This document shows positions 23,786 through 62,761 of a stretch of DNA of 64,000 bases, piece by piece (the stretch's first letter is position 1; the number at the start of each line of letters is the position of its first letter). Where the stretch lies: the NCBI GenBank assembly GCA_016748015.1, contig JAAOMT010000761.1:252139-316138 (forward strand), written 5' to 3'. A program made the position numbers and the translations under genes. The stretch is from Geosiphon pyriformis uo1. Its lineage: Eukaryota; Fungi; Glomeromycota. Below the pieces are notes generated by a model, which was not told the origin of the DNA, made no database searches, and saw only the letters and a program-made list of their open reading frames with translations.

Positions 23786-23824
<39 letters not shown>

Positions 23825-34704: not shown

Positions 34705-34836
34705 TTACATGATCGAGCATTGACCAGTGCCACTGCCATCGTCTGGGTCACCAGTTGGTCCTTTAATTGAGCCGTTTCCAGGGGCGATAATTGAGAGTGG
34801 ATTGAATGAGGATTGATTGTTGGTTGTTGGTTGCAT
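34705..34836 (-). CDS. 43-aa CAAX-terminated peptide, putative lipopeptide pheromone precursor, copy 1
   Basis: ATG..TAA, MQPTTNNQSSFNPLSIIAPGNGSIKGPTGDPDDGSGTGQCSIM; differs from the other copies only at synonymous sites. Confidence 0.85.
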   Translation of the reverse strand: MQPTTNNQSSFNPLSIIAPGNGSIKGPTGDPDDGSGTGQCSIM

Positions 34837-34951
34837 TTTGTTTAAGTTATTTGATTTGATTTAATTTGATTTTGAGAATTCCGTATCTTTTTCTTTTCTT
34901 TAAGTTCTTTTGGTTGAATTGAATGAAAAGAAATTAGGAAGGCGCGATCAA

Positions 34952-35155
34952 TTTTATAGAAAAATATATGATTAGAAACAATATTAACTGAAACAGAATG
35001 TTAAAAAAGTCAAATTATTATTCCATTTAATCAGAAATCTGATAAACGCATTGTTAAGCTATACTAACAATATCCTAAAAACGGATCAGCTTTTAAAATT
35101 GATTATTTTAGTCGAAAAAGGCAAGATGTAGGTCATTGTTTTTTGCATTACAATA
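34952..35155 (-). promoter_or_regulatory. Promoter of peptide copy 1: TATAAAA (34952-34958) plus clustered AACAAT/ATTGTT sites
   Basis: TATA ~116-122 nt upstream of the ATG; AACAAT 34977-34982; inverted pair CATTGTTA 35049-35056 / TAACAAT 35065-35071; CATTGTT 35134-35140. Conserved in the other copies. Confidence 0.55.
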
Positions 35156-38084
35156 TTATAGAACGAATGCATGAATTTACAATGCCTTAAAAAGCTTTTG
35201 AGTTATACTTGTACAAAAAATACTTGTTTATTAATGGACAATGCTAAAAACTCTAAATTTCGATTATTCCAGTTCCTAATTTTTAACTGTATGTTAATGA
35301 GTATTACATGCGAGAAAATTTATGACCAGCATGCAAAATACTTTTGAATTCATAATTGTAAAAGGAACCTTTTTGGAATCTCTTCGGAAGTAAAATATGT
35401 TTAAAGATTTAGGTTTGCAATTCACTTAATGTGAAATAAAATAGTATTTTTGTTTCTTATTAAAAGTATCAATCTATAAACAAATGCTTTAAATTCAAAA
35501 TTGATTTGAATAGAAATGAAAATATTTTTTAAATTAAAATTAATTTATATTAGGTTCAGCTAAACGCCTGCTAATTTTATTCGTCTAATTTTAAAATAAA
35601 TTATAAGAATGTTTACATTACATGACTCACTTTCTATTTCGTACTCTGAAAAATTTTTGAATGGGAAACTAACTATCAACTTTTACTATTGCAAATTGAA
35701 AGAGTTAATGTTCAACAATTATTCATCTCCATTCGAGCACCATCTCGTTTTCATTCTTCAATTCTTAAGTCAAAAATAGGAAGACGGGACATTTTCAATT
35801 AGAACGAAAAATATTGATGTTTCCTGAGTTTCAAATTAGATATTGTTCTGCTAAAACTATAACTATTCTTTGAATTGTATAACCTGAAGCTTAGGTACTA
35901 ATAAAAAATATCAAATTAAGATTTAGATAATTTATTCATTTTTAATATCAGTTTTATTATCTCATGAAGAGTTTTTCACTTTATCCATTTGTTTTCTTTA
36001 ATATTTTTTGACAGTATTTTCTATATTCTGAAAATTTATTAATGATATTTTCTAATTAAATATTACTCTTTTCGTTAATAATCAAAGAATTCAGCATTCT
36101 TTATAAGTTTTTTTTTACCATTAATTAACATATTTTACTATTTAAACAATATTCTTATGATGAAAATATTGTTTATTTATGATTCAAATTTTATTTAATA
36201 TTTTTATGTGAAAATACTTTGGTTATTCCAAATTTTAATATTTATTATTATAAAGTCATCAATAAAATTTTAAACTTAGATTAAAATAAAAATTTAAATT
36301 CTAAATTTTACATCAAAAGTTGATGCTTGATAGCTAAAAGCACAATAAAGAAAACATGAAAATACAAGTGCAATATAAATTTTTGCTCAGAGCAGTATTA
36401 AAAAGATAATCTTTGACAATAGCAATATTTCTTAGAAGTATTTTTTCAATTGTTAGTATAATAAACTTTAGTATTTTAACTTCTATTATTAATTCATATT
36501 AAAAGTATAATTTAAAGGTGAAATTTATTTCAATTTTAAAAGAAATTTTTATAAAACTTATAACTTCAAATAGAGGATGGAATAAAATAATTTGAGTGTA
36601 GATAAACAGTTAATTTTAGTTTCAATGGATTTTGATCGGAGAAATATGGTTCAAGATTGGTTGATATATATTTATCGCAGGCTTTGGTTTCAGAATTTTC
36701 AAGGTACTTATCAGGTGAATAAATTAAATTTTTTTTATTGTAAATCGTTCAGCTTTTTATGCGAATTGTTTTCATTTCAAGATTTCTATGATCAAATAAT
36801 ATCTGTTACTTTTTTCTCTTTGATAGTATTGTCAGCGTTATTTATTATTAAATTAAATTTCTTTGGAAACTATGAACCATAGAAACTATTGAGAATTAAT
36901 TTAAACTATCTACCGATATTTCTAAATTTTCAAAAATGACTTTACATCTTGCAGTTGCAATGAAAAATAACCTGTTATTTTAAGATAACAATTTAATAGA
37001 ACTTTTTAATTTTCAATTGAGTCCAATATTCTTAATATCAAAGATTCTTCGTATCACAGCTATCATAATCAAAGACTATAAAATTCCATTATCAGATGCA
37101 CTAAAATAAAATTGCGAAAATTTGAAAGGTTATTACCTTCATAATCACTGCTAACAAAAGTATTTATAAACTTTTATTATATCTCTTCTTCTTATTAAAG
37201 TAGAATTTAACTAATAATAAAAGATATATTTTTTAATTTAATTTTGTCAGATTTTTAAGTCACTGAAATAATCAAGAATGAGAATTTTAATAGGAGTGAC
37301 AATTCAATAGATCAACAGATTTAAGAAAAAACTTGATATTTTAATTTCTAATAATTGTTACAAACCCAAATTAATTTTGAATTTTCTTTTTTATTATTAG
37401 CTCACATCAACTTAAATTTTCCAGCTTTAATACAAAAAGTAAAATATTAAACAATCAAGATAACCAAGATAATCAAACTATTTCTCATAACTAATTTCAC
37501 TGATTTTTCACACAATTGAGTATTGAATTTTTACAGGGTTCTTATCAAAGGCTCTTGTATCAAACCTTTAAAAAGTTTAAAAACCGATCTGAATTAGATT
37601 TAATAAATAACTTAATTCAGACGAAATGCTCGAATGTCTTGGGTTGTGTTAAGTAAGTAAAGATTGAACAGGTTCTTATTTGACTTTAAAGTATCACTTT
37701 GCTATTAAGAGATATAGTTTTAAAGATCCAAATAGCTTTATTTTACTTGAGCAAAAAAACTTTTTATGATTCTTGATTTAAAGCCTATCATTACCAAATT
37801 TACATATTAAGATAAAACTAACAAATTATATTACTCTAATGCTAATAAACAATTAATATTAAATAATTGTGAAATAGAAATATGCCGTATCCTTTAGTTG
37901 CGAGTAAATTCTATCGACTTTTGCTTTATTGCTGATTAATAAGAGCTAGATATCTATGTAAAGAGTCCAAGTTTGCATTATATTAACTTGAAGTATGTAA
38001 GCCAGAAGTGCCGACGATAATTTTCACACAATTTACTGGGATGGTTCGAAAAAGAGAACTTGCAATATGAATACTCTGCAACTT

Positions 38085-38216
38085 TTACATGATCGAGCAT
38101 TGACCAGTGCCACTACCATCATCTGGGTCACCAGTTGGTCCTTTAATTGAGCCGTTGCCAGGAGCGATGATTGAGAGTGGATTGAAAGAGGATTGATTGT
38201 TGGTTGTTGGTTGCAT
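38085..38216 (-). CDS. 43-aa CAAX-terminated peptide, putative lipopeptide pheromone precursor, copy 2
   Basis: Identical protein to copy 1; synonymous differences only. Confidence 0.85.
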   Translation of the reverse strand: MQPTTNNQSSFNPLSIIAPGNGSIKGPTGDPDDGSGTGQCSIM

Positions 38217-38403
38217 TTTGTTTAAGTTATTTGATTTGATTTAATTTGAATTTGAGAATTCAATTTCTTTTCCTTTTTTTTGGTTGGATTGAATGAAAAA
38301 AAGTTGGGAAGGCACGATCTATTTTATAGAAAAAGATATGATTAGAAACAATATTAACTGAAGCAGAATGTTAAAAAAGTCAAATTATTATTCCATTTAA
38401 TCA

Positions 38404-38535
38404 NNNNNNNNNNNNNNNNNNNNNNNNNNNNNNNNNNNNNNNNNNNNNNNNNNNNNNNNNNNNNNNNNNNNNNNNNNNNNNNNNNNNNNNNNNNNNNNNN
38501 NNNNNNNNNNNNNNNNNNNNNNNNNNNNNNNNNNN
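38404..38535. other. Assembly gap (132 N)
   Basis: Run of N in the promoter region of peptide copy 2. Confidence 1.
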
Positions 38536-41500
38536 AATTTTTAATTTCCTATTCTATTTGAATAGTTGCTAATTAGAGTGCAAATTGAAACCTGTTAAAG
38601 GCGAAAATAATTTAGGTTCGATATTTTTTCAAAAAAGTTTTCATGTTTTAATAATTCTTTTATTTTCAAATATAAGAAACTTTCAAGTAGAATGAACAGT
38701 ATAGATGTTATGCCAGTTTATGAGTAGAAATTTTTTGCTAAAAAATAAATATTAAAATTCTACATAACGCTATCTATAATCTGAAGCTTAAATAATATTA
38801 ATTTTTTTAAAACAATACCAAAATAAGTGTTGAATTTTTAATATATTCATTCAGAAAATTTATTTAAAGCATTATAAGTTTTACGAGTCAGGTTTATTTC
38901 ATTTTTTGAGTCAGATAATGGTATTTTTAATGGAATATTATTCTTTCAGCATTATTGACCAGAAGCTTTTACTGTGTAAATTATTTTGTGATTGATTAAG
39001 AGGACCAACAACTTTTACTATTCAAATAAAGTTTTGCTTATGACTTCATTTGGTAAAAAAAGGGTCTTCCGATTATAATCAAAAATAACCAATATTGTGA
39101 AAAGCAAGAACAATTCATTTGATCTAAAAAACTCTTTTCTTGAAAACCTTTAATAACTAAAGACACCTAGGAGTGGCTCAATCAAAGACTTACCCATGGC
39201 AACGACGCAGGGAGTGTTCGATCATTATTACTTATATTTTGGTGTAAATCTTAATCAGCTTTATATGCAATTTTTTTTATAAGCTTCAATAACTTTTGAA
39301 ACTTGAAATTTTGATTTTTTTATATTTCTCAAACTTTCCATTTAATCTCTAAATCATATTATCTCACGCAATTAAATCTGAAATAGAACGATGACCCGCA
39401 TATGATAAGTTTCAAAACCTGATTTAATTGATCCAATTTATAAAATATGAAATAACATAAGTATATTTAAAATTAATCAAATTTCATAAAATGAACTGAT
39501 TAATCGAATGAATATAACCAATATTATTAAAACCAAAATTAATCACTGAAATATTGAATTTTTTAAGATAATCAATAAAAGCAATAGTTTTAAGAATATC
39601 AATGACAAATAAGAAAGATCTTAATTCAATTACGAAAAAACCATGTTTATATGTCTTGAACTAATGAAATGCTGAATTTTTGTGGAAATTAAATAAGTTT
39701 TTACATTGAATTTAGCCAATAATTAAAATGGATTCCAATCAAAATTAGCATCGGAAAATGGCAATATAAAAAAAGATGTGGGCTGTAGAATTTTCCTAAA
39801 TTTTCGGACTTTCACTCAGAAAATAGAAGTTTCAATTAAAACAAATTGGTTTAGTTAAAATATATATATAATTTATTTAATGTATTTGTAAATATTTTAT
39901 AAATTATAAAAGTAATAATAATACTTAAAATTGTAGGCTAATTTAACAAAAAATAATTGAAAATTATTCAATAAAATAAAAAAAGCAAAATTTAATACAT
40001 AAATATGATAATTTGGTAAAAAAATTAAACAATTAAAAAAATATAATGAGTGATCAAGATTTTGTATAAATAAAAATATTTAAAATTTCTGTTAGTTTAA
40101 TGCTATTTTTATTTAAAACTATTCTATTGCAAATTGAAGACACAAATGAATAAATAGCAAAAAAGCAGTAAAGTAAATAAAATAACACATCAAATTTTAT
40201 ATCGAAATTATTCAAATAGAAAATCAATTTTAAAACATCAATTTTAATTCAAAAAAAATAATGCTTATTTATCAAAATTAAATGAATATTTTTATATTTA
40301 AGTAATTTACTAACAGATATTTAATTATTTTCAGATTAATTTTGGCAAAATAAATATAGAAAAAATGAAAAATATTTATTAATATAAAATAAACTATTAT
40401 TTAATATAAAAATAACTTTTTAAATAATTATTTTTACAATTTTAAAAAGTTAAATATATATCAAAAAATTAATAATCAATTAAAATTAGTTCAACAAATT
40501 TTATTCAACAATTAAATCATTGATCAAATTAACAATTAAGTTAAAAACTACTTTAAAAACAAAATGACCATTATTGGTATATAAAAATCAAAAAATTAAA
40601 TTCTGGTAAAATAGATTAATTATTGCATAAATTTGTTTTATTTTTTCAAGATTTTATTTACATAAAAGATGATGAATTTTTAATTTTTAAATATTTATAT
40701 ACATATATATTGTATATAATGAAAATAGGTAAACTTCAAAAATGAAAAACCTTTGATTTCAAAAAAAAATTTATAAAATAATAACAACTTAAATTTTGTT
40801 TATTATAATAATTATATTGTATTAATTTAAAAATATATAAATAAAAGAAATGACTTTGATAGACATTTTTGATTAAAAGTTCATTATAATATCAAATTTG
40901 ATAATTTTATTAATTTAAAATATTTCAAAAATAATTTAACAAAATACTTTCAGAATAATTTGATTAATAAACGAATAATTATATAAAACTTTAACTTAAT
41001 TAATAAAAAATTTTGTTTAACATTTTTTAAATTATGAAAACCAATAATTAATCAAAAATACAATATTGATTAAATATCAAGTTTATTAACTTTATTAATA
41101 ACAATTGGAAAAATGGCCTTAAAACTAAAATTTTTAAAATATATAAATAGTTTATTATTGTTACAAAAATAAGACATTTATTTCTTGAACAGCATTTTTT
41201 AGAATTCAATAAATCCTATTGTTATTCAAAAACAATTTTTTTTACTTTTCAAGCTAATTTTAACAAATACAAATAAAAAAAGATATTGACTGGTTCAAGG
41301 AAAAAAGAGATAATTTCTAAAGCTGTAAGAAGTTTTCTTTATATATTTAACAAAAAAATCAGGTCAACATTTAGGTCAATAACTTAGTATATGTTGCAAC
41401 TTAAAATTTAATTCAAACTCTTGTACAAATTTCACTTTTCTTTTTTGAAATTAACTTAAATCCCTATTTGTTGAAACTCTTATCTGGAAATTTTTCTTCT

Positions 41501-43430
41501 AGGATAAAATCTCAATGTAATATATTTTATAAATTTTGATTTATATTTGATTATAAGTTTGGTTTTCTAAATTTAATTCAACACCCTTATAACAGTAACG
41601 CTATAAAGACTTTTAAAATTTCCTACAAATATCTTGATAGACCTCAGATTTGTGATTCAAATCAAAAGAATTTTTAGCGCATTAAAAGTCCAAAGGCAAA
41701 AATTGCTTTTTTTCACTAAAATAAAACTTTTATTATTATTATTCTCTTTCAATTCTTCATATTTTTAAATTTTTAGCTGCCATTTTTTATTCAGGAAGTT
41801 GCCTTTTTCTATATAGCCGATTAATACTTCCTGGCAGAAATATTTTATTCTGTTTAATACATCCTCTCTTCATTTCTAAAGCATAAATGGCCTCCTTCAA
41901 AATTTTCACATACGAATAGCCTCCAATTAGTTTCTCATTTCGAAATTGCGATATATAATTTCTTAAGATCCAGGAGTGTTTTGCCCTAAATGTACAAGTT
42001 TGTTGGGAAATTTTCACTCTTAAATTTTTATTTGCAAACGAGCAATAAACAAAGCTTGTTTTCGAATCAAAGGATTTGACCAAAATTTCTAGTCAAGTCG
42101 AAAAATCTATGCCAGGAACAGGTTTTTTAAGATTCAAATCTAATGATTCAATTATGGTACCACAACTATGTACAACATTTGCGATCGCCCCAAGTACTCT
42201 TTTGCGGGCGCAGTGATTAAAGGGAAATTTTTTCTTTAAAAAACTTTTTCAATGCATAATTTTGTTATCTTATTAATCGAAAATTTGGCTACTTTAAAAT
42301 TTGATAATGATATAATCTGAGTAATTCGTTGATTTTTTTGGCTCTCCATAAGATACTTTCTTTTTAATAATATCCTTGTAAAAAAAACCTGTCAGAGAAT
42401 GATTTGATCCAAATCTTAGGTCTGAATTTTTTTCCTTACTCAAAAAGCAGTATAGGAGTGTGCCTATAAAAAAATGCATTGCAAAGCAAAAAAGAAGCCA
42501 GCCCTTCCGAATAGTCGACTGAACCCCCCAAAAAATTATTTTCCATTGCAAATATAGATTTCCTAAAATTAACCAATTTAATTGGATTCTTCTAACTATA
42601 AAAAGCGCTTTTCTTTATGACCCACAATTGTCTAATTCCAAAGTTTTTACGTCTCCATAAGGTTCTAGAGATCTGCAAGTCAACTTCTTTAAGAGAAATA
42701 ACCCTGATGGCATTTTGCAGAACTTAATATTTGTATCACAAGGTTTTTCCATGGGTTTCGGTGAATCTAACTTCCGTTAGCCGATTCAATAAAAATTACT
42801 TAGCTCGCCGCAATTGAGGAGGTTTTGCCTATCAGCCCAGGAGATATCCCTCTAGGCTTCCGGTAATTTCCGGGGATAATTTCTCATATAGTTTGCAGCA
42901 ATAACTTAATGGTTATGAGTATTCAATATCCTTGTTCTCTTGATGATGAATAGCAAAATAAAATTGCCAGGCCTGGGTTGACATGAATCAAGATTTAATT
43001 ACATCTAGCAATTCAACTTGTAGAAGTTAAAAATCCAAATTTTTGAATTTGACTCATTGAACTCAACTGTTCATTTTATTAATTCGAAGTATCTCCTTGC
43101 ACTTTATTAAATTAATTGTTTGGTATGTTTCACCAATAACAATACTTGATTGCCGATGCACAGGTACTGCAAATGATATATGTTTACCAATTATTTCCGC
43201 CAAACGTCACACGGCAAATTTCCCAATATAGATCACTGGCAATCACATATCATGGGTTTTTGTCAGTTTTTGGGGTCTGATATCAATTTAGCGTATTAAA
43301 TTAATCGAAACTTTATAATTGCCAATAATTTTTTATGTAAAAAATACCTCTCTTACTAAAACATTTCAGAAACCGTTTGAAGTATTCCTCTTTTAGGTTC
43401 ATTTTTCAGTCAAGGATAAAAATAAGAAAC

Positions 43431-44577
43431 ATGCCAAATAAAAGGAAACCTAAGTCACATGTGAATCGAATACGGGAAAATTTTTTAAATGAATATACTT
43501 TATCGAGAAGATCTCAAAAGTTTGTGGATGTCAAAGAAGTTCAAACACCCACCGTCGGATATAAAAGCTTCAATTGCCCAGAAAATATCCCTCTCGAAAT
43601 TCTCACTAATATTTGTACATACCTGACGCCAAGTGATCTCAAGGGTCTAAGACTAGTATGCAAATTCTTTAATGAAGTTCTCGGATCACCGGTTTATTCA
43701 ATTTCACAACAAATTTGGGAAAATTCGAGGCTTGCTTACTGCCCAGACCAACAGATGCCACCTCCTGAAGATATGTCTGAACAGGCATATGAAAACATTG
43801 TTCTCTATGAAAATGGATGTCAATTATGTGGCAACAAAGATGAAACTCCATCAATTTTCTGGGTGGTAAAAATACGTTGTTGCACAAAGTGTCTACAAAA
43901 CAATATTTTGAGGTATACCTCTTTGCCTTTATGTGCCTTTGTCACCTTAAACTTGTATTAAGTTTCTCTAAATTTTTTTTCCAAGTAAGGAACAGCTTCA
44001 AATAAAATGGCAAGTTCCAGATGAATTAATCGAAGTCATTGAACCGGTCACTCAACGTGATTTGTATGAGGATGGGCTTTCTTACTATTGGAAATCACAG
44101 GTTGCTCTAAAAATTAACCAATATATTCGACTTTTTCCCACGAAAAAAGAGACCTGGCTTCAACACGAAAAGACTCGTATTCACAAAATCAAGCAAGAAA
44201 CTTTTCGACGAGAACAATTTGATGACCATCAAATTCAGCACAAAATAAATTCATTGAAAAGTCACCTGGAGTCATTGGTTACAGAATTTTTTAAATCGAT
44301 TACTTCTCCTCAACCAAGGGGTCTTCGAAAACAAGCTGTACAAAGCTGTCCTTGTTATAAAAAGCTATTGTCCGATATCGAATCACTTCCATTTATCCCG
44401 AAAGAGTGGGGGAGCTTTAAAGTTAAACTGGAACTCGAAATTAAAGAAAACCTCAAAAAACATTATAATTTCAATGGTTATACAAGTTCTAATGATAGCA
44501 CTATTGCTGATGATGAAGATCATCAAAGTCTTGACGACAGGTGTGCGAATGTCCTCCACTTAGGAGTTATCACTTGA
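43431..44577 (+). CDS. F-box domain protein, ~357 aa, 2 exons (43431-43912, 43986-44577)
   Basis: F-box IPLEILTNICTYLTPSDLKGLRLVCKFF; QQIWENSR...PPPEDMSE..Y; CQLC...CCTKC Cys cluster; an in-frame GT..AG intron joins the two ORFs. Confidence 0.88.
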
Positions 44578-47390
44578 GAAGCAAAAGACTTTTTATAAAG
44601 GCAAAGAAATATTAATAAGGCTCTTTGCTTCATAAAAAAATTTCTAATTACAAACATTTTTTCTTCATCCTCTTTAATAAGACTAGAGCGTTTTGCTTCG
44701 ATAGTTTATATTAAAGAATGCTGCTTTTATATATAAGAGCAATTCTGTTTCGACTTCGAGTGAAACTCATATTAATTAATGTGGGCAATTGCCCGATATA
44801 TGAGGTTAAATAAGTTGCATTATAAACCTATATTTTAATCTTAAACTTTTAAAGAAATATAAAAATATTTTTGAAAAGGATTTTGCTTAAATAAGCTGAC
44901 CTAAAATTTTTACAGAATGACTAGTGGAAATCAACTAAGAATAAATTTAGAGGAAATCTATTCACAAGTTAGAGGCTAGCCCAAGATATTACTAGAATTT
45001 AATGATTTAAAATTTTGTCTTTTAAAAATGTTTTTTGAAATCTTGAATTGTGCTTGGTCTCATTATCCGATGTGCCCCCTTATAATATCTATACTACACT
45101 AAAACTGGTTTTAAAGCAAATTTATTTATTTATTTTTATTACGTGACATTTTAACTAATATATACGAAAAAGATTCCACTCACTGAAGACTAACGTGGCA
45201 GCTAAGAAATTTTGTAATTTCAACCGGAAAATTGCTGAGCTTGTTGGTTGTAACTAGGAAATTGTCGGGAATATACTCAAATGTGAGGAGAACGTCCCTG
45301 AATTTCCGCCGAGGCAGTAAAAAGGTCGACTTCCTCTTCTTAACACTCCAGAATATGCCCGGCGAAATAAAGCAGTCATTGCGGGTTACAATTATTAATT
45401 TTCTATATATATTTAACTGGCTAAAAACAAAAATATCCGTAGTTTTTCGATCATTGCCCAATTCTTATGGTCTTTTTGCTTTGATCTTTTTAGCCAACAG
45501 AAGGCCATATGAAAATCTACATGCGACTCCAAAACGGTAAACTTACAACCATTCACGTGAGCATGGAAATGACATTTATTCCCCTCCTTTCGTAAACTAT
45601 CCTAAAACTATTTAAAAGTGTCACTTTCTACAGGATAGATAGGCTTAAAAATGAATTAATATAATTTAAAATGTTCTCCATTTCAAAAATTATGTGTAAA
45701 TATGGTCACTTCATTATATTATGTTATCTTTTTGATCACTATTTTAATTAATTAATATGAATCTTTCAATTAATCATCTTTTCAGTAAATAATTCACCTT
45801 TTAAATTAATTAATTTATATCATTGATATATTTTTTACTTACATTATGGATAATGAAATCTTAATTTAATTTAGATGTTTTATTATAACTCATTAATTGT
45901 ATGTATATAATTTTTTATCTTATCAGCTTACTTTATTATTATATTATTGTCATTGTTGTTATTTTTATTTTTTAATTACATTATTGTTATATTTATTTAA
46001 ATTATATTATTTGCATTAATTTTAGAACATTATATATTACATTTCAATTTATTGATATTTATATATACAACTCTTTTTTATTAACAAAATTCTTTGGTTG
46101 AACAATATTAATTATTTTTTATTTTATTAATATTTAGTAAATAATTAAAAAATTTAAATTAAACAAAATTTTCTAAATAAATTAACGAGATAACTAATAA
46201 AAAAAATTTTTAATAAATAAAATATTAAATTTCTGTGTCAAAATATTTGTATTAATTTGGTAAAAAAGAATCATTTGGCAATAAACTTTTTATAATCGTT
46301 TACAGTTCAAGTTTAAGTTTTTAGAAAAATAAAATAAATTCATAATTGCTTAGCAAGTTAAAATTGTACGTCGTGTTTTTAGGTTGGCAAAAATAAAAAA
46401 TTTTTAATTTTCTTATTCAATATTTTATTATAATTGTTAATATTGAATATTTTCGTATTAAATGAGTTTTAATTTGGTTTATCACTATATCTTACAAAAT
46501 TCATCTGAATTACAATATTCTATTAAAATTTACAAAGATATATCATATTTAAATTATATTATATTTATATAATAAATTTCTTTTCTTTTTAAATAAAGAT
46601 TAATGTTTTCATTTCTCGCTTTGTTTTTTCTACTCTCATAACACTTTATATATTAATGTCAAAAAAAATTTCTAATTTTTTTTTGACGGTAAAATTTTGA
46701 AATTAGAGATATTAATTGAAAAAACTTAAATGAGTTATGTTATCAAGGTTTGAATTATCTAAAAAAATAGAGAAAAATAGCTCATAATATATTTTTAAAA
46801 TACTTAAATTAAGTTATATGAATTATAAGCATTCATAATTCAAATTAAAAATTTTATTAGCAGTAAAAACTTCAGATTTTTTATTTAGGTTTCTATTTTT
46901 TTTGGGGATTCCAAATATCTAAGGCTCAATTTTTGCGTTGAATAATTTAATTTTTCAAGTTCACCAAGAATATACCTTAAAAGCACCTGAGTAGCAGTAT
47001 TTTATATATGATAGAAAACCACATTTTTTTTTTGAGTAAAAAAGTTCTACAGTTCTTGAGTTAAAGCTTTCCTTTATTAAGTTTAAATGCTAGAAGCATT
47101 TTATTTAAACTTTGGTAAACCAATGACATTTTATAAAAGTAATGCTATAATCCTAATGCACAATTAATATTAAGAAATAGTGAAAGAGATATATGCGATA
47201 TCATTTCATTATAAATAATCCTATTGACTTTTGCATTACTATTGATTATTAATAGCTTGATAACTATGTAAAGAGTCCAAATTTGCATTATATTAACTTG
47301 AAGTATATAATTCAGAAGTGCTGACGATAATTTTTCACACATATTATTGGGATAAAAAAGAGAATCTTCAATATAAATACTCGGCGAATT

Positions 47391-47522
47391 TTACATGATA
47401 GAGCATTGACCAGTGCCACTGCCATCGTCTGGGTCACCAGTTGGTCCTTTAATCGAGCCGTTGCCAGGGGCAATTATTGAAAGTGGATTGAATGAGGATT
47501 GATTGTTGGTTGTTGGTTGCAT
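47391..47522 (-). CDS. 43-aa CAAX-terminated peptide, putative lipopeptide pheromone precursor, copy 3
   Basis: Identical protein; private synonymous codons at L14, I16, S23, S41. Confidence 0.85.
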   Translation of the reverse strand: MQPTTNNQSSFNPLSIIAPGNGSIKGPTGDPDDGSGTGQCSIM

Positions 47523-49729
47523 TTTGTTTAAGTTATTTGATTTGATTTGAATTTGAAAATTCAGTTTCTTTTCCTTTTCCTCAAGTTATTTTGGTTGGAT
47601 TGAATGAAAAGAAATTGGGAAGGCACGACCAGTTTTATAAAAAAATGTGATTCGAAACAATACTAATTAAAGCAGAATATTAAACAAGTCAAATTCGATC
47701 ATAAATTTGACAGATGCATTGTTAAGCTATGCTAAAAATATCCTAAAAACGGTTTTTTTTATCATTTTAGTCGAAAAAGGCAATATTTGGGTCATTGTTC
47801 TTTGCACTACAATATTATAGAACAAATGCATGAATTTACAATGTCGTAAAAAGGCTTTTGAGTTATAGTTGTACAAATAATACTTGTTTATTCATGGACA
47901 ATGCTAAAAACTCTAAATTTAGATTGTTCCAGTTTTGATGTTTAACACTATGTTAACGCAAGAAAATTTATGACTACCATGCAAAATACCTTTGAATTCA
48001 AGATTGCAAATAGGGATCTTTTTGGAATTTCTTTAAAAGTGAAATGTGTTTAAAAGATTTAGGTTTGGGATTCAGGGAATGTGAAATGAAATTGCATTTT
48101 TGTTTTCTTAGTAAATGCTTTTAAATTCAGAATTGTTTTGGTGAGAAATAAAAGTATTTTTGAATTAAAGTTTAGAATAAATTATAAAGATTTTTTCATT
48201 AAATGCATTTCGTATTCAGACAGTTTTAATTTTAATAAATTTTTACCTACAACATTAAATATCAACTCTTATTCTCCAAATTTAAACCGGCCAAAGGATA
48301 AAATAATTTGACCCATTTAAAATAATTTGATCTTTTCTCAAAGAATTTATTTTCAACAATTCTTCATCTCCATTCTGCATTTCTTTAAGTCGAAAATAGG
48401 AAGATAGGGAAATCTTAATTATAACGAACAATACAGATATTATGCGAGTTTCGGAGCGGATATTGTTCTGCTTGAACTATAAATATTCTTTAAATTTTGT
48501 AATCTGAAGTTTAAATACTAATAAAAAAATGTTGAATTAACGTTTAGATAATTCATTCATAATAATGTCAGTTTTATTTTCTCATTGTGTTTAACCATGT
48601 AGAGATTTACATCTGGGCATTTATTTATGTTAAAAATTTTTACAAATTTAAGAAAAATAATCTCTGATTAAATTATTCAGCATTCTTTATAAGTTTTTGT
48701 TGATTAATTAGCATCTTTTACTATTTAAACAATAATTACATTGCATTTTTCAAATTTAATTTTCAATTTTTATGTAAAACCACTTTGGTCATTCCAAATT
48801 CTAATACTTATTGTCATAAAGTCGTCAATAAATTTTAACCTTAGATTACAATCAAATATAAATTTTAAATTTTACATCAAAAGTTTTATGCTTAATAGCT
48901 AAAAGTACAAAAAAAACATAAAAATACAATGAAATACAGCTTTTTTTTAAAGCAGTATTAAAAGAATAATTTTTCACAAAAGGAATTTTTTTTATAGGCA
49001 TTTTTTCATAAAAAACTTCTGTATTTTAACTTCTATAATTAATTCATATTGAAAGTATAAATTAGAGATTAGATATTTTCAATGTTAAAATTTATTTTTA
49101 AGAAAAACTTATAACTTCAAATAAAAAAATTTAATAGAATAATTTGAGCGTAAATAAAACATTTAATATGAATTTCACTGAATTTTGATAGGAGAAATAT
49201 GATTCAAAGATTGGTATATATATATATATCGCAAGCTTTTAATCTCTTTGATTTCAAAAATTTAATAATTTCAAGGTAAATATCAGGTTTGAGTTGAGTT
49301 AGTAAAGATTGAACAGGTTCATATTTGACTTTCAAGTTTCACTTTGATATTAAGAGAGATATTTTTAAAGCTCCAAATAGCTTTATTTTACTTGAGCAAA
49401 AAAACTTTTTATGATTCTTGATTTAAAGCCTATCATTACCAAATTTACATATTAAGATAAAACTAACAAATTATATTACTCTAATGCTAATAAACAATTA
49501 ATATTAAATAATTGTGAAATAGAAATATGTCGTATCCTTTAGTTGCGAGTAAATTCTATCGACTTTTGCTTTATTGCTGATTAATAAGAGCTAGATATCT
49601 ATGTAAAGAGTCCAAGTTTGCATTATATTAACTTGAAGTATGTAAGCCAGAAGTGCCGACGATAATTTTCACACAATTTACTGGGATGGTTCGAAAAAGA
49701 GAACTTGCAATATGAATACTCTGCAACTT

Positions 49730-49861
49730 TTACATGATCGAGCATTGACCAGTGCCGCTACCATCATCTGGGTCACCAGTTGGTCCTTTAATTGAGCCGT
49801 TGCCAGGAGCGATGATTGAGAGTGGATTGAAAGAGGATTGATTGTTGGTTGTTGGTTGCAT
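49730..49861 (-). CDS. 43-aa CAAX-terminated peptide, putative lipopeptide pheromone precursor, copy 4
   Basis: Identical protein; one synonymous change (S35 AGC) relative to copy 2. Confidence 0.85.
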   Translation of the reverse strand: MQPTTNNQSSFNPLSIIAPGNGSIKGPTGDPDDGSGTGQCSIM

Positions 49862-52800
49862 TTTGTTTAAGTTATTTGATTTGATTTAATTTGAATTTGA
49901 GAATTCAATTTCTTTTCCTTTTTTTTGGTTGGATTGAATGAAAAAAAGTTGGGAAGGCACGATCAATTTTATAGAAAAAGATGTGATAAGAAACAATATC
50001 AATTCCCTTTGATCATAAATTTGATAAACGCATTGTTAAGCTATACTAACAATGTCCTAAAAACGGATCAGCTTTTAAAATTGATTATTTTTGTCGAAAA
50101 AGGCAAGATGTAGGCATTGTTCTTTGCTCTACAATATGATAGTACGGAATCATGAATTTTCAATGCCGTAAACAGACTTTCAAATGATTATTCTTCAAAA
50201 CGTGCTATAGTTGTACAAAGAATACTTGTTGATTCACGGACAATTTTAAAAACTCTAAATTCGATTATTCCAGTTCTGACGCTTAAGTCTATCCTAGTGG
50301 GTATTATAGAGAGTAAATTTATCACTGGCATGCAAAATATCTTTGAATTTAAGATTGTAAATAAATATCTTTTCTAAATCTTTTCCAAAACAAAGAAACT
50401 TTAGAGATTGGGAATCAAATAAATCTTTTGTTTTGTTAACACAGCTATCAATCTATAAACAAGTGCACTTCAATTTCAAAATTAAAACTTTTCATTAGTC
50501 TTTTAATTTCCTAGCCTTCAAAAGTCTTATTTGAATACGTGTTAATTCTTAAAGTTGCAATTTAAATCTGCCAAATAGCGAAACAATCTAACCGAATTTA
50601 AACAATTTGATATATTTTCAAAAAAGATTCATGTTTAAAAATTCTTTATCTTCTCATTCATAAGTTGGACATAAGAAAATGCAAAATCTTCAATGAGAAC
50701 CATAGATATTAGAATTTCATATGAGACTATGTATAACTTGGATCTTAAATATCATAAAATCATTTAAAACGACAGCAAATTAAAATCTCGGGTCTTTACT
50801 CATCCATTCAGAAAACTCATTCAATCAGATTTAGTTACCTTTATTATATATCCTCTTTAATTATGAACAGCTTTAGAATTCTCTTTGACAATCTTTTGGG
50901 TAGTTTCTACCTCTGAAAATTTGAAAGTAGTATTTTCTGATTGACTAGTTTCTTTTACATAATATTTAAGAATTCAGCAAGCCTTAATATTTTGGAAACA
51001 TCAGAAATACAACGGTCAACAATACCCAATTCTTATTTGATTTTCGTATGTGGGAATGGTTCAATTAGAGAACTTATCTATTGCAGAGGTATCATATTAA
51101 CACTTAAATTATGAATTGCGAATATCGGTATTTCATAAAGTTTGTGAATCTCAAGTGTATTAATAGGGGCTTTTATTCAAGAACTATTTTTTGGACTTTA
51201 TAAATTCTAAACATCGAAAACTATAAATACCATACTTTCAAATGTTAAAATAAGTCATTTTTTGGTTTACTCAATGCAGTAGCCAAATATTTTTTTCAGG
51301 TTATTTTTTAAATGGTACTGTTATAAAAGATTTATTTTAAATCTCTATCAACTTTTCATGCTAAAAAATTTGAAATTGTCTCCAGAACATAAACTAACTT
51401 AGAAATTCAAATAGTGTTTTTTTTGTAAGTCGAAATTATTTTATTAAATCTTTAACTAGTTTACTATTTTAACTTCTTAATTGGGAATTTCTAACTTTTT
51501 CATACCTTTGAATCATACAGTATAATTCCATGTATTAAATCTGAAATAGAGAAAATAAACCTAAACCTTTTAATTTTGTTACCATTTTATAATTTTTCAA
51601 CCATGATTCTTTAGCATATTTTTAACTAACTTTGGAGCCTAATTTACAAATAACTCAAAATTGGTTAATTAGTCATTATAATCAAATATTTAAAAAATTA
51701 CTTAATATTCAAATTTAAAAGTAAGATTAGTTTTATTTTGACTTTCAACATATTTCGTCTAAATTAGTTAATTCAATTCAACTTTTAAATATATGCTACT
51801 ATTAAATATATTTGACAGTAATCAGCTGCTATAAAATGAACTTAAATTAATGAAATCAGCACAAATTGCTCATTTGTTATATATACTGTTAAAAAATTAG
51901 AGTCAATAAATATAAATTAAGATAAAAATTAAATTATCAAAAAGATTAATTTATATAAAAATTTTATTAAAATTACATTTAATAATCATGAGTTTGATAA
52001 TTTCACAAAAAATTTTGTTTTTATGTTGGCATTTCAAATAAATTATTTACAGCCAAAAATTAAAAGCCTTAAGTTAAATTATTTTTCAATAATAAGTATT
52101 ATATAAAAATTTCAAATAATAATTCGGATTTTCAAAAATTCTCTTATTTGAGCTAAAAGTAATAAAAAAAAATGAAATCCTTTATTTTAATTTTTAATTA
52201 TATCGATGCTAAAAACTTTAATTCAAAGTCAAAATTTATTAAGTTGCATTATTAATTATTCAATTTTTTTTAAAAAACAAGAAGAAATATTTATTAAAAA
52301 GCAATGTGACTATATAAATTCATTGGTTGGAAAAGAATAATATTTGTAACTTATTCAAAACAAAAATAATATGAATAAACAACAATTTTAAAAAATGTTT
52401 AAATGATATTATATAATAATAATTTTTTCGAAGTCTTGGGTTTTCTTAATATTATTAAAGACATCTTATTCTCAACCATGAAAAAATTAAAAGTTATTCT
52501 GTTGATATTGTTATTAACTTTATTACAAAGCAAAGATAAAATCACATACAAAAATCAATATATTTTGGATATTTGTAAAAAAAAAGGGTAAGAAAGTTAC
52601 CAAAAACAATTAAAAAGATTTTGACTGAAAAAAAAGATTGAAAAAACATGATGATGCATCAAATAGCTTAACAATTAAGATCCGTGTTGCTATTTTTCAT
52701 TTTAAAGTGCATATACTTTGTCAAAGTCTTTATGAGTGGCGTTTGTGGTAAACTCACATCGAGATAAGGAGGTCTATTGATAGGTTGAATTATCTCAAAT

Positions 52801-55800: not shown

Positions 55801-56997
55801 ATGACTTAACTCAAATTAGGCATTCAAAGGAAGAAAAGTTCGGTTTTTAGAAACTATTTCATGATTTATTGTGTGTGAATTATAAAACGCCAATCATAAA
55901 TTTTTTATTCTCTTTAGCTCAAAACATGAGATAACTCAGGATGTGACGAGTTTGTATGTGAAAAATTCTTCAGTAAAACACTTTCAAAAAAAAAATTTCC
56001 CCTAAATGTTTCAACCTTGTCTTATTTTAAAAAGGGCAGGTAAAACTGAAATTCATCTTTTACAATATAAAGGATTCATCGCCAAATTAGGAACCTCCCT
56101 TTGTTCAAAATATTCGTCAAAGTTTTTCCGTTATATCAATTAAATATTAAAAAACCCCCCACCTAAAAAAAAATGAACTATAAGTAGAAATATCCCTTGT
56201 GAGAAAGTCGTCTACTCCACTAAAAAGTCTTTGCCTATGATTTAATTCAATCTAAACTAATAATTAAATTATTAAATTATTAAAAGCACATGAGACATGA
56301 CAAATCAGACCCTTTGCAGATATCTCCGCGTCAAAAACCTGAGATCTTTTATTCTTTAGTTTATTTTTAAGAGAAATAAAATCAAAAAACTACATTTGAA
56401 CCGTTTATATTGAGTATATTCAATACCTTCGAAACAAAGTGAACTTTCAAAACTCTTTTTCATTCAATATTGATTATAGTTAAAATCAATGATTGTTAAA
56501 TTTTAACCATTTTTAATATGTATATATTGCTCCTCTGTCTTAAGTTTCACAATTATGCAAGGATTTAAAATTTATGCGTCATTATGAAAAATTAATTCTA
56601 GTATTCTATATTTGGACAAAAAAGTCTACCCTTCCGCAATTTTGCATACATAAAACAGGAGATTTAACTTCATTATTCTTTGTCTCCACATTAATCTCTA
56701 GGTATCTCACATGAAAATGATATTCAGTAAATACTTTTACTTTGCATTTTGAAATTAAATACATTTATACATTTTCAACTTTGCTATAAATCATGTGACT
56801 ACTTTTTATTTAGATTTTGATGATAGATAATCACCAATGAAAAGGTTATCTTTTGATTAATAAAAAAAAATTAAAAATAATCCTGCTTTTAGTTAAAATT
56901 TTAACCTTTAATATTATTCGGCTACTCTGATATTTACAGATATTTCACATTGTCTTTTTCTCAATTTTAAAAATAGTTAATCATTTTTAAGCTTCCT

Positions 56998-58540
56998 TTA
57001 CCAAGAAACATTCTGATTCTGTCCATATTCTTCATTCAAACGAAAACCTCCTGGATGTGAATTCTTCCCATGTTGATTGTATTCATAAGGTAACTGTGAG
57101 TATTGCTGGTTATTATAATATTGTAGTTGCTGTTGTGGAATTTGCGTCGGAGGTAGAGCTGAGAACGAATGCTCAGATGGTATGTTGATAGAAGATGAAT
57201 ACATTGTTGGAATTTGATGATGTAAAAGTGTAGCAATAGTTTGAGGTGAAGATGGCACTGGAAAAATTACTGGAGATGAACCAAAAGGAGGTGAAGCATA
57301 AGGCGAAGTGGATCCTGAAGTAATAAATGACTGCTGTGGCGGTGGATAAGGCGAATTAAATTTTTCATTAGATGATATAATTGGGATCGTTCCAGCATAT
57401 GAAGGTGGATTAGGATCGGGTGGAATTGGTAGAGGTCGACCTTTGTTATAAGTATAAGATGTTGATGAATCTGGTTCACCAAGTTCGTAAGTGCTAGTTG
57501 ACGGATTCAAAAAATGCTTTGGATTGGTGACTAACCCAGGCTTAGAATGATTTGTTAACAAAGCAGAGACTCCTTCATTATTCTCGTGGACCAAAACCTC
57601 TTCCTCAAATTCAGCATACTCTGCTACTGATTCATTAGCATCTTCAAGTGATTTTTCATGTTCCTCTTTGCGTTTTTGTTCCAAGAATGCCTCGCCACTC
57701 ATTTCAGGTTTATGTGAAATCTTTTCGGCATTTTTGAATCGTGAATGAATCAATCGTTGTCCCGCGATAAATGCGATAATAGATACGAACAAAAATGACA
57801 TTGCGGCCACCATCATCCAAAAAGCGTTCGATAGTGAAGCATTGAAATTCTGATTTTTTTTGATTGCTTTTACCGCGATCACAAATAAAATCAAATCGAC
57901 GAGAAATGCAAACATTGTTGTGAGCAATGCTGCTATGGCACATTTGACAATAATTGTTAGGAAGTTTCCTTGTCGTTTGGGGCGAAAATGTCCAATTGTT
58001 CCCATTATTGTTATTAAAAGTGCCAGGCCGAGAGCTAGAAAACAAATTTATTTTCTCTATCAAATCAAAATTCAAGTCAGAGAAAGTTTGAATGCGTCAA
58101 AGAAACCATACCTATAATGTGAGTAACAGCCAAGTATCCTAGTCCAGCACCTATTGTTTCACCAAGTATTCCAACATTAAACTTTTGCAATTCTGGGGGA
58201 AGGTCATTTGAATCTTTACATGAGCAAAGAAATTTTAGTCACTTCGAAAAACCCGGGATTCTTGTATTTGAAAGACGGATAAGGTTAAGATTTTAAAACG
58301 TAACTTACCTATTTTAAAACCGGGTTTTGCAGCCGAGCATGTAACCTGTCCTTTAACTTTCGCACACCAACCCCATAAACCAACACGAAAATAATCAACC
58401 AGGCTTTCAGATTCAGAATTTACGTTAATGAAGTATATACCGGGGGTAAGCGGTACACTAATGTTCACTAAGAATAAACATAGCAAAGCGCTAAATGCGA
58501 GAACTGTTCCAGGTGTTGCCTCACGGCCCAAATAAGGCAT
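56998..58540 (-). CDS. PalI/Rim9/SUR7-family multi-pass membrane protein with a long Pro/Ser/Gln-rich cytosolic tail, 3 exons
   Basis: N-terminal TPGTVLAFSALLCLFLVNISVP; claudin-like GLWGWC..(8)..C motif; three further TM helices (THIIALGLALLITIMG, AIAALLTTMFAFLVDLILF, NAFWMMVAAMSFLFVSIIAF); PPSY motif in the tail; two in-frame GT..AG introns. Confidence 0.87.
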
Positions 58541-61500
58541 TCTTTTAAATGTCCACTATATGATTTGAAATTAAGAGACTACAAAAAATTCAAGCCAACT
58601 AGATCTTTTGTAAATAAGTTATAAAATTTCAGATATGAATTTCTTTTGCGTTTTAGAGTATGAGGATTTAAAATATTGAGAATATGTACATGAACTTCGT
58701 GGGAAGCAGTATTTATAAGAGTGATGCAGGATTCACAGTGCACATGGAAAATGTCACGAAGTTAAATTCCTATGCGTGGCGGATGGTATCTTATGTTTCT
58801 ATTTTGAAAGAATAAGAATTCAAGTCCCCCGATTTGTTGCGTGTTTGGTGTTTCATCAGGAGAATATTAAATTGGCTTAATCAATAAACACAAAGCCATT
58901 CTATTATATGTCCTGTTATTGATGATGATTCAGCATCACAGACAGTTTAGCTTCAATAAATCCTTCTATTCAAGACGATAAAGGTATGACATGTCCTGCA
59001 GGAAATCACTTAATTTAGTGAAGTGCCAAGTTTTACAGCAGATCATATATACGCCTTGTCCCATTGTTTTTTGAAAACTTGGCTCAAAAAGAAAATTATT
59101 TATCGATTCATTCAAAAAGCGAAATCCTAATTTTCAACTGATTCAAATTTTTTCCCCAAGAAAAATAAAAGTGTGACTCCTTTGGTTTTTTTATATTAAA
59201 TCAAATTTTATAAATGTACTTTAACTAAAGAAAGGATAAGACTTTGCGAAAGAAAAGCAAGATTTAGTATTGAACGGTACAAAAAAGAGATAGTTAAAAA
59301 GTTTCAGTTAAATTTCTTATAACAAAAAAGAAATTACTATAATTTGGAAATTTAATTACGATTATATAATTGAGCTTCTCAAAGCAAAGACGATACAAAC
59401 GGGGGGGGGGGGGGGGAAGAAGTAAATTTATGATAGCATAATTCGCTGTAAAGTATTGATAATTAAAGAGCTTAAAAGAACTATTATACATGTGCAAAAA
59501 TTTCATCTCACATGTTAATCATGTTTAAACATCAGTTTTAGATTTCAATTGATCATGGCATTTTTCAATAAGAATATAAAATTTGAGGAGAAAATATCTC
59601 CTCTTGTTATTAAACTAATTTTTATTTATAGCTTTAGAATTCTAGATAATACCATGAATATGATTTCGATTCAAAAATTGACGCCAAGAGCACTCTTGGC
59701 TTGTCTGTATTCAATATTATTGAAATAGGTTATTCATTTATAAGCCACATATCTTGATTATTTTTTTCATGGTGAGGGCTCCTTGTCATTGTCTTGATAG
59801 TATATCGTAAAACTGACAAGACCACTTGACAGAATTCGATTAAAGTTTTCCCACCAATATGACTTGTGAGGCTTTACACTGCATACGAGGCGGTGTAATT
59901 GAATCATTACGAAAGTAAAACTGACATGTGACTAGGATAAACATTTAATCCAGAAATCATCAAGATTATCAAGTGATGATAACGAAATTATAAATATATT
60001 TTCTCTTATTGGAAAAAGCAAATCATCCGAAATCTGGCTTGCAGATATTTCATTATACATTTTTATGAATTAGTTTTGGGAAAAACGAAATTTTTTTTAT
60101 TATGACTTGATCCCACGCTGAATCATTGTCTTAAGTTAAAAATGGGGCTAAAAAAATAAAACTCTTTTATGACTGAGAGCCTATTCAAAGTATTGTCTGT
60201 TACAAACAAATGATAAATAAGTTGTAAACCAGATAAAAGAATGTAGATCGGTTATTAAATATCCCAATTCAAAAAACTCGATGAATATTAAAATGAATGA
60301 TTTGAAATTAAAACAGCAGTTAACAGTATTTAATTGTTTTCACTATTTAAATTTCAATTTGCTTATAAATAGTTGCTGATGAATATTTCCCGGATTATAA
60401 AAAATTTCTGAAAAGATTCTTAAGCATTATAATATTACAATCTTCTAACTATTTTTAGAGGATGAGAATATGAACAATGTTGTTGTGTCTGTATAATAAA
60501 TAATTTTTATATTAAAATTGATAATTAAGTATCAAAAAACAAATACTTTTTTGGCATAAGATAAATAATTAATATATATTTGTTAAATATAAATTGTAAT
60601 AAGATTAATTTATTTTGTACATTGCTTTTTATAGTTTTTTTGTATTTAAATATAGACATTCATTATACTTATCTAAAATGTTGAACTTAACTATGTTATT
60701 TACTATTATTAAGAAAAATTTAAAAATAAATATCATAATATATATATACCTTATTAATTGTGTACATTTTTTTATCTAACGTATCGTATAAAATGGTTTA
60801 TCAATTTAATTTGTATCCTCAAATAAAATTATTATTGTTATGACAAAGCAAGAAAGATCAATAAAACCACATAGCAGATAAGTAAATAAGTAATTGAGAA
60901 CTAAATATTAACCGGTGTTGATCTACTTGTGGATCAAATAACCAGTCCAACTCTTCCTTATATATCTGAATCCCAATTCCAAATTTTGTTACTAGCTGAT
61001 TTGATCAGTCAATTTTCTAGAATATTCCAGAATACTCAATGGTTAAAATTGGTATAGTATATTTAAATAAATATAATTACATATTTTAATTGTAATTTTC
61101 CCAAAAACATATTTACATGTTGAAATAAATCGAAAATTAAATTAAATTTTTTAAGTTATTACGACATTTTTAATATTAAAAACTACAAATAAAATATTTT
61201 ATTTATATGTTTGATTTAAAAATAGAAATATAATTATGTAATTATGCTTAAATTAGATTTTTATATATAATTTTAAACAAAAGAAATTTAAAATCTAAGA
61301 TTTAATAAATGATCCAACACAATTATTATTATTTGCTGAAGTTTTTCTATTAAAGAACTCAAAGAATATAATAAAGCTGACTACTGAAACTGATAATGCT
61401 TTAAATGAATTCTTGAATGGAAACATTAAAGATATAAAAATTTATTTTGGTATTGTCTTAAAAGATTTAATATTATTTAAGCTGCAGGTTATAAATAACG

Positions 61501-62335
61501 TTATGTAGAATTCCAAGTATACTTATTTTTTGAAGAAAAATGTATGCATAAAATCTACACTGCTCATTCTACTTGAAAGTTTCCTGTTTTCTTATGTTTG
61601 ACCTAATAATAAAAACATCTTTTTTAGAAAAAAATCAAATTATCTAAATTGGGTTAATTTATTTCGCCCTTTAACAGGTTTTATTGTGCACCACTAATTA
61701 GCAACAATTCAATAAGACGTTTAAAAAATAGGAATTAAATATATACAAATACGAAATATTTAAAATACAAAGCAGGCATCTTTACAATTAATACAGGAGG
61801 GGTCCGCAAAATTATCTAAAACCTAGATTAATGAAGAGCCTAAATTGGGTTATGTAAATCGAATAATTCGAGCTTTTTTAAAATAAATTTTTCCTATGCA
61901 CACTTAGCAAAAATTCATTAATGCCTGATAATATTAAATTCTATTTCTTACTAACTACTTGATTTCAAAATTTCCTTCAGATTGATTTTGAAATTGAAAA
62001 GCATTCGTTTATGATTGATACTTATTCTAAAAAACGAAAAATCATTTTATCACAATTTTTAAATTATATTTTGCTTTCGAAAAGGTTTAAAAAAGATATC
62101 CATTTATAATCATGAATTCAAAGGTATTTTCCGTCCTAGCGATAAAGTTTCTTGCATGTATTACTTAGCGTTAAACAGCAGGAACTGGAATAATCAAAAT
62201 TTAGAGTTTTTAATATTGTCTGTGAGTAAATATGTATTCATTGTACAACTATAACACGTTTTACAGAATACCCTTTAAAAAGCCTGTTTACGGTATTGTA
62301 AATTCATGCATCCGCTATGTAATATATTGCATTGC

Positions 62336-62515
62336 AAAGAACAATGACCCACCTTTTGCCTTTTTAGACTAATAATCTGATATGTTTTTAGGGCATTGTT
62401 AGTATTGCTTTAACAATGCATCTATTAAATTTATGATTAAATGAAATAATATTTTGACTTTTTTAACATTCTGCTTCAGTTAATATTGTTTCTTATCACA
62501 TCTTTTTCTATAAAA
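62336..62515 (+). promoter_or_regulatory. Promoter of peptide copy 5
   Basis: AAAGAACAATG 62336-62346; inverted GCATTGTTA 62393-62401 / TAACAATGC 62411-62419; ATTGTT ~62485-62490; TATAAAA 62509-62515. Confidence 0.55.
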
Positions 62516-62629
62516 TTGATCGTGCCCTTACAATTTCTTTCATTTAATCCAACCAGAAGAAGTACGAAAAAAGAAAAAGAAATTGAGTTCTCAAATTCAA
62601 ATTAAACCAAATCAAATAACTTAAACAAA

Positions 62630-62761
62630 ATGCAACCAACAACCAACAATCAATCCTCATTCAATCCGCTCTCAATCATTGCTCCTGGCAACGGCTCAAT
62701 TAAAGGACCAACCGGTGACCCAGACGATGGCAGTGGCACTGGTCAATGCTCGATCATGTAA
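62630..62761 (+). CDS. 43-aa CAAX-terminated peptide, putative lipopeptide pheromone precursor, copy 5
   Basis: Identical protein; private synonymous codons at P13 and T28; 48% GC (64/132) in a strongly AT-rich background. Confidence 0.85.
   Translation: MQPTTNNQSSFNPLSIIAPGNGSIKGPTGDPDDGSGTGQCSIM

Follow-up and report, generated by a model that had tools for sequence, protein, structure and literature searches.

The 64,000-nucleotide (nt) stretch of DNA analyzed here (henceforth the window, to whose positions the coordinates of the gene copies refer) comes from Geosiphon pyriformis, a glomeromycote hosting Nostoc, and contains five copies of a small gene, each with an open reading frame (ORF) of 43 codons running from an ATG to a TAA (Table 1). 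All five ORFs encode the same 43 residues. The peptide has a polar start rich in Gln, Thr, Asn and Ser, and also Pro, without a hydrophobic signal sequence, whereas its second half is Gly-, Asp- and Pro-rich and holds the only cysteine (Cys40), four residues from the end, in a terminal motif of the CaaX type.

An earlier note on this DNA had listed 13 codons that vary among the five copies, all of them silently, and the codon alignment reproduces this list allele for allele: each of the 13 variable sites lies at codon position 3, each is silent, and the ORF shows neither an amino acid change nor an indel. With a probability of 0.235-0.276 that a random point change is silent, depending on transition bias, the likelihood of 13 out of 13 silent changes is 7e-9 to 6e-8. 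Pairs of the ORFs are 1-10 nt apart (copies 2 and 4 differ by 1 nt), with a pairwise difference of 0.151 at position 3 and none at the other two codon positions, and the ratio of nonsynonymous to synonymous divergence (dN/dS) within the window is 0. Read in the other five frames, which contain stops, the same variation would be replacing, altering the amino acid in 13, 13, 13, 3 and 13 of the variable codons; the value of 3 belongs to the antisense frame that shares the third positions. The flanks are rich in substitutions and indels, as the note had also stated, with pairwise differences of 0.10-0.20 in 50-nt windows and gap fractions of up to 0.3; the exception is the last ~40 nt 5' of the ATG, which are strongly conserved among the five copies (pairwise difference 0.037).

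A multicopy gene family under purifying selection

A six-frame search for the peptide across the Geosiphon assembly (128 Mb, 792 contigs) recovered 37 matches on 14 contigs, 33 of which are intact 43-codon ORFs that are spread over 12 contigs and for the most part form clusters, either in tandem or with mixed orientation (11 in two arrays on contig C729, 5 in the window and 5 on C551). The identical peptide is encoded by 24 of the 33 intact copies, from 21 distinct DNA sequences; the 33 sites that vary among these 24 are all silent, comprising 32 third positions and one first position of a Leu codon. Over all 33 copies the mean dS is 0.60 and the mean dN 0.018, a ratio of 0.029, and a minimal count of codon-state changes in 31 copies yields 47 silent as against 5 replacing ones (binomial P = 2e-24), so that the claim that this frame is translated and under purifying selection gains more from the genome than from the window alone. 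No indel interrupts any of the 33 ORFs, whereas each of the adjacent blocks of 150 alignment columns has ~30 gap intervals, the majority with lengths not divisible by three. All five replacements fall in residues 1-22 and none in residues 23-43. Thus, the observation that the putative pro-region is as invariant as the C-terminus is valid for the five window copies and has to be qualified genome-wide.

The four other matches are decayed, one being frameshifted, two divergent or truncated, and one heavily divergent with a frame-shifting gap. In L034 (G000:C551:39722-39844) deletions of 3 nt and 1 nt shift the frame; in L036 a one-base gap does so amidst many changes; L035 has an internal deletion and many replacements, with a Cys-Leu-Ile-Met end retained; and in L037 the C-terminal half alone remains. 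These relatives show what becomes of the sequence once constraint is lost.

The copies lie within repeated units of 0.7-0.9 kb, two of them (2 and 4) having duplicated recently, which is what might be expected if no protein were made and the constancy reflected a repeat or mobile element that had recently been duplicated or converted, or alternatively a constraint on RNA structure. However, divergence at position 3 matches that of the flanks, both within clusters (0.15 versus 0.13) and between them (0.29 versus 0.30), with positions 1 and 2 being almost frozen. Because position 3 tracks the flanks in this manner, the third positions are taken to be neutral and the duplicates are old. Between copies that encode the identical peptide, as many as 51% of third positions and up to 37% of the flanks differ, so that these copies are neither recent nor homogenised, and the constancy of the peptide cannot be ascribed to recent duplication or gene conversion. 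RNA pairing could not generate the strict three-base periodicity of the variation together with an indel-free ORF, and neither compensatory pairs nor a match to an Rfam family were found. With the ratio of silent to replacing changes added to this, the explanations that dispense with a protein can be regarded as refuted. The ORF hence emerges as a real and old one, present in many copies and subject to very strong purifying selection, with its translation as well supported as sequence alone allows. Codon usage was also considered as a sign of high expression; the G+C content at third codon positions of the ORF (0.39) exceeds that of neighboring genes (0.23-0.33) only slightly, too weak a difference to serve as one.

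Exhaustive phmmer and word-indexed profile searches of proteins (other Glomeromycota genomes, including that of Rhizophagus, were not scanned as DNA) recovered relatives in just two species, Ambispora leptoticha and A. gerdemannii, which both belong to the Archaeosporales; beyond Geosiphon and Ambispora the only hits were spurious repeats in a coral EGF protein. Likewise, a scan of JGI metagenomes with the family alignment gave 216 pattern matches and no relatives. Inspection of the contigs showed that the A. leptoticha copies, four in number, form a cluster within 10 kb, and that the two of A. gerdemannii are unlinked. All six Ambispora ORFs are 39-43 codons long with the stop directly after C-[VI]-I-[MVW], just as it directly follows Cys-Ser-Ile-Met in the 33 Geosiphon copies, and the family alignment has 15 invariant positions. 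In comparisons between species conservation is highest in the first 28 residues, with a ratio of nonsynonymous to synonymous proportions of difference (pN/pS) of 0.18; this sequence-specific constraint between genera bears out the suggestion in the earlier note that the N-terminal part is constrained, and this part might serve a separate function. The 10 residues preceding the Gln-Cys are the most variable between species (pN/pS 0.44), yet show no replacement among 31 Geosiphon copies.

Every public gene model of these loci, in Geosiphon and Ambispora alike, adds an intron, by which the stop or the final codons are lost, and fuses the ORF to unrelated downstream sequence, encoding a lipase, a Kelch protein or no domain. 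Taken at face value, these models would make the ORF the first exon of longer spliced genes, with the CaaX and stop not marking a true C-terminus. This is very improbable: the modelled donors differ in nearly every copy, being placed after residue 34, 37, 40 or 43; codons 35-43 vary only silently; the stop directly after the CaaX is kept in the 33 Geosiphon and 6 Ambispora copies of three species; and one- and two-base indels occur 3' of the stop. Owing to this loss of the CaaX end from all public models, a collection of 15 billion proteins does not contain a single one of the true CaaX-ended ORFs, and mis-annotation probably explains why the family went unnoticed. It also serves as a caution for annotation, in that the CaaX signal of these loci is hidden in databases. 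At one locus each in Geosiphon (L033, G000:C704:508907-513327) and A. leptoticha (L040:7782-13360) the peptide copy lies directly upstream, on the same strand, of a gene for a single-pass membrane protein of ~750 residues, to which the public models fuse it. These two membrane proteins are 30% identical (E = 1e-59); their family occupies more than 30 Geosiphon loci, including one just before the window (C578:249883-250245), and the adjacency may be due to chance.

Duplicated units, promoters and neighboring genes

In the window the flanks can be aligned for ~250-450 nt, such that each copy is embedded in a duplicated unit of 0.7-0.9 kb comprising promoter, ORF and 3' flank (Table 1). The units of copies 2 and 4 share 97.8% identity across 714 nt (37641-38354 versus 49286-49999), and their match stops 50 nt short of the sole run of Ns in the window. 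This assembly gap hides only the distal promoter of copy 2, and the finding of silent variation is unaffected by it. The contig end coincides with the window end; no telomeric repeat was seen there. Between the copies are genes for an F-box protein and a SUR7/PalI-family membrane protein, and elsewhere in the window is a paralogous pair of ORFs for NAD(P)H-binding proteins.

Table 1. Peptide genes, their duplicated units and other features of the window
Feature	Position	Strand	Evidence and remarks
Copy 1, 43-codon CaaX peptide gene, ATG to TAA	34705..34836	-	ORF list and codon alignment; identical peptide, silent differences only
Copy 2, CaaX peptide gene	38085..38216	-	Codon alignment and unit comparison; recent duplicate of copy 4, 1 silent ORF difference
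Copy 3, CaaX peptide gene	47391..47522	-	ORF list and codon alignment
Copy 4, CaaX peptide gene	49730..49861	-	ORF list and codon alignment
Copy 5, CaaX peptide gene	62630..62761	+	ORF list and codon alignment; orientation opposite to copies 1-4
Duplicated unit of copy 1 (promoter, ORF, 3' flank)	34452..35362	-	TATAAAA 34952-34958; AACAATG 35049-35055, 35134-35140
Duplicated unit of copy 2	37641..38354	-	TATAAAA 38322-38328; distal promoter lost in gap
Duplicated unit of copy 3	47145..48022	-	TATAAAA 47633-47639; AACAATG 47717-47723, 47793-47799
Duplicated unit of copy 4	49286..50373	-	TATAAAA 49967-49973; AACAATG 50031-50037, 50115-50121; CATTGTT 50048-50054
Duplicated unit of copy 5	62230..63207	+	AACAATG 62340-62346, 62412-62418; CATTGTT 62394-62400; TATAAAA 62509-62515; AATAAA 63044-63049
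Assembly gap, sole N run	38404-38535		187 nt upstream of copy 2 ATG (38216), outside every ORF
NAD(P)H-binding (NmrA-like, PF13460) ORF	15630-16256	-	One of a paralogous pair in opposite orientation, 8 kb apart
NAD(P)H-binding (NmrA-like, PF13460) ORF	23815-24483	+	Other member of the pair
F-box protein gene	43377-44577	+	Apparently two exons (43377-43961, 44062-44577); between copies 2 and 3
SUR7/PalI-family membrane protein gene	56998-58540	-	Exons 58235-58540 and 56998-58005; long Pro/Ser/Gln-rich tail; between copies 4 and 5

Alignment of the promoters of the 33 intact copies reveals a TATAAAA at -112 to -122 and a conserved A-rich leader ending in AAACAAA before the ATG. Further upstream, at about -176 to -304, conserved blocks hold the HMG/SOX-type heptamer AACAATG or its complement, with at least two such sites in each of the four window copies that have a readable promoter. 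The heptamer reaches a density of 5.7 per kb upstream of the Geosiphon copies, as against 0.24-0.32 per kb, though this enrichment is not independent evidence because the copies share ancestry. In Ambispora 8 heptamers occur in 6 x 360 nt upstream, where 0.52 are expected (P about 9e-8, to be read with the caveat that the heptamer was chosen after viewing the Geosiphon alignment), and none downstream. The Ambispora promoters are mostly unalignable with each other, making this test largely independent in sequence terms. HMG-box factors control the pheromone genes of Schizosaccharomyces pombe and of smuts such as Ustilago maydis, and by analogy a factor of this type may control the peptide genes.

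A candidate farnesylated pheromone precursor

The precursors of a-factor-type pheromones have been characterized as being shorter than 100 residues, with a Ser/Thr-rich N-terminus and a terminal CAAX or CPAX (PMC10569646). The Geosiphon peptide shares this organization in being shorter than 100 residues and devoid of a signal peptide, and in ending in a CaaX directly followed by a stop, a feature kept in its relatives. A Met in the X position of the CaaX directs farnesylation. The Geosiphon genome encodes a single STE3 gene (G000:C642:334886-335808), which starts with an ATG, has two exons and covers all 292 positions of PF02076 (E = 1e-41 and 4e-19), in addition to a Ste24-type M48 protease, an ICMT and three prenyltransferase beta genes. 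STE2 was not found in this genome, a weak negative result given that the control for the same search matched nowhere. The maturation pathway of the yeast a-factor has been described (PMC2134810, PMC2148179), and the study of arbuscular mycorrhizal fungi by Halary et al. 2013 identified STE3 and STE6 while stating that it could find no a- or alpha-factor-like gene (PMC3834313). The pheromones of most early-diverging fungi are stated to be unknown (PMC6339444), and our searches of the literature, which did not extend to subscription journals, yielded no description of a CaaX pheromone for the Glomeromycota.

Taken together, these features suggest that the most likely function of the gene family is to encode a multicopy precursor of a farnesylated, secreted a-factor-type pheromone sensed by STE3, a reading to which we assign a probability of about 0.6-0.7. 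It also appears probable, albeit with slightly less assurance, that the orphan STE3 of Glomeromycota has its ligand in this peptide, which would be the first a-factor-type farnesylated pheromone known outside Dikarya. Prenylation, processing, secretion, recognition by STE3 and a role in mating are here predicted by analogy with the a-factor. Under this model each copy is a small intron-less gene consisting of a TATA box ~115-120 nt 5' of the ATG, the conserved leader and the 43-codon ORF, whose precursor would be made in the cytosol without a signal peptide. A farnesyltransferase would then farnesylate Cys40 of the terminal tetrapeptide, a Ste24- or Rce1-type protease would take off the last three residues, the ICMT would methylate the new C-terminus, and the N-terminal extension would be partly cleaved off. 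The resulting lipopeptide might be exported by an ABC transporter and sensed by the single STE3-type receptor, with the many copies potentially serving dosage and the segment before the Cys carrying the receptor specificity. That this segment is fixed within Geosiphon and different between species is the pattern that would be expected of a receptor-specificity determinant. The two A. gerdemannii copies (L041:8307-8435, L054:10001-10129) differ at several residues in their pre-Cys segments, and one of them ends in Cys-Val-Ile-Val; this pair may represent two pheromone specificities within one genome.

Several observations weigh against a pheromone. To our knowledge, sex has never been observed in these fungi, and we know of no pheromone gene whose copy number comes near 33. 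A Pfam scan of 13 family members gave no family match at E up to 10, which carries little weight because pheromone precursors can rarely be aligned between classes, and a look-alike search of the ESM Atlas gave no usable match. Other observations of this kind also speak for the principal rival explanation, under which the peptide is translated and prenylated without being a ligand of STE3, being instead either an intracellular micro-protein anchored in the membrane or a lipopeptide that signals in a context other than mating, for example in hyphal self-recognition, fusion or symbiosis. The N-terminal extension is unusually conserved between genera, more so than the C-terminal part, which is not expected of a mere leader and fits a function of the whole chain. 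The part preceding the Cys is Gly/Asp/Pro-rich, acidic and hydrophilic, unlike the hydrophobic mature a-factor and basidiomycete pheromones, and CaaX endings are not confined to pheromones (PMC10569646). Moreover, the contig bearing STE3 holds none of the 37 peptide matches, although they may still be distantly linked to it, given the fragmentation of the assembly. On the other hand, a chain of 43 residues without a domain or a second membrane signal resembles no known intracellular CaaX protein, whereas its size, the lack of a signal peptide, the clustered multicopy genes, the orphan STE3 and the HMG-type promoter sites match pheromone precursors. As for the symbiotic version of this explanation, the family is kept in the plant-symbiotic Ambispora and is therefore not specific to the Nostoc symbiosis. 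We consider a prenylated peptide with a role other than that of an STE3 ligand to be unlikely, while being the foremost competitor of the pheromone.

With respect to linkage with other genes, a homeodomain gene coding for 604 residues (G000:C657:364670-366484; L052:2670-4484, minus strand) is situated 21-24 kb from the peptide copies on contig C657 (387080 and 389542); with 9 homeodomain hits and ~13 peptide loci such proximity has a probability of ~5% by chance.

Sex in the arbuscular mycorrhizal fungi and their relatives is a long-standing question, and a defined 43-residue candidate makes it testable. These fungi retain meiosis genes, a MAT-like locus and STE3, with no pheromone having been identified (PMC3834313). 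The present candidate combines conservation across genera with one of the cleanest signatures of purifying selection possible for a small ORF. If it is indeed a pheromone sensed by STE3, the lipopeptide/Ste3 system would predate the split between Glomeromycota and Dikarya, and the synthetic peptide would be a reagent with which arbuscular mycorrhizal fungi could be provoked into their cryptic sexual or recognition response, so that this can be studied.

Comparison with known CaaX peptides and proteins

The CaaX tetrapeptide itself recurs in cellular proteins: prelamin A ends in Cys-Ser-Ile-Met and K-Ras4B in Cys-Val-Ile-Met, identical or nearly identical to the endings in Geosiphon and Ambispora. 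Prelamin A is, furthermore, cut upstream of its farnesylated Cys by a homologue of Ste24 (PMC2148179). However, prelamin A and Ras are large, folded proteins with further domains, as opposed to the domain-less peptide described here.

There is also a resemblance to the MFA1 and MFA2 products of Saccharomyces cerevisiae. These are likewise short cytosolic precursors without a signal peptide, encoded by more than one gene copy. They have an N-terminal extension rich in Ser, Thr and Gln, and their only Cys lies four residues from the end, after which comes the stop. Maturation of the a-factor involves Ram1/Ram2, Ste24/Rce1, Ste14, Axl1/Ste23 and Ste6, with Ste3 as the receptor, and counterparts of this pathway, namely Ste3, Ste24, ICMT and prenyltransferase genes, are encoded in Geosiphon. 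The a-factor precursor begins with Met-Gln-Pro, as does the Geosiphon peptide. The mature a-factor and Geosiphon residues 24-31 also share an Ile-Lys-Gly followed after three residues by an Asp-Pro (PMC2134810), which may be a coincidence in such short peptides. There is no detectable homology between the two, the Cys lies 9 residues beyond the Asp-Pro in Geosiphon and 2 in the a-factor, and the Geosiphon peptide differs further in its acidic, Gly-rich rather than hydrophobic pre-Cys part, in its 33 copies as against 2, and in the strong conservation of its N-terminal extension between genera.

In gene organization the family is reminiscent of the basidiomycete pheromone precursors (PF08015), such as Ustilago mfa, Cryptococcus MF and Coprinopsis/Schizophyllum phb, which are 35-60 residues long, end in a CaaX and are often multicopy and clustered. 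Their products are sensed by Ste3-type receptors only, with no Ste2, and their genes are driven by HMG-box factors via upstream sites. The Geosiphon peptide is also a short, multicopy and clustered CaaX peptide, in a genome with STE3 and no detected STE2. It differs in having no match to PF08015, and while basidiomycete pheromone genes adjoin the receptor gene in the mating-type locus, the Geosiphon STE3 is on another contig. A further system for comparison is the orphan STE3/STE6 pathway of the arbuscular mycorrhizal fungi (PMC3834313), which belong to the same phylum and have one STE3, as does Geosiphon. To this pathway the peptide family, so far seen only in the Archaeosporales, would add the component that it has been missing, the ligand.

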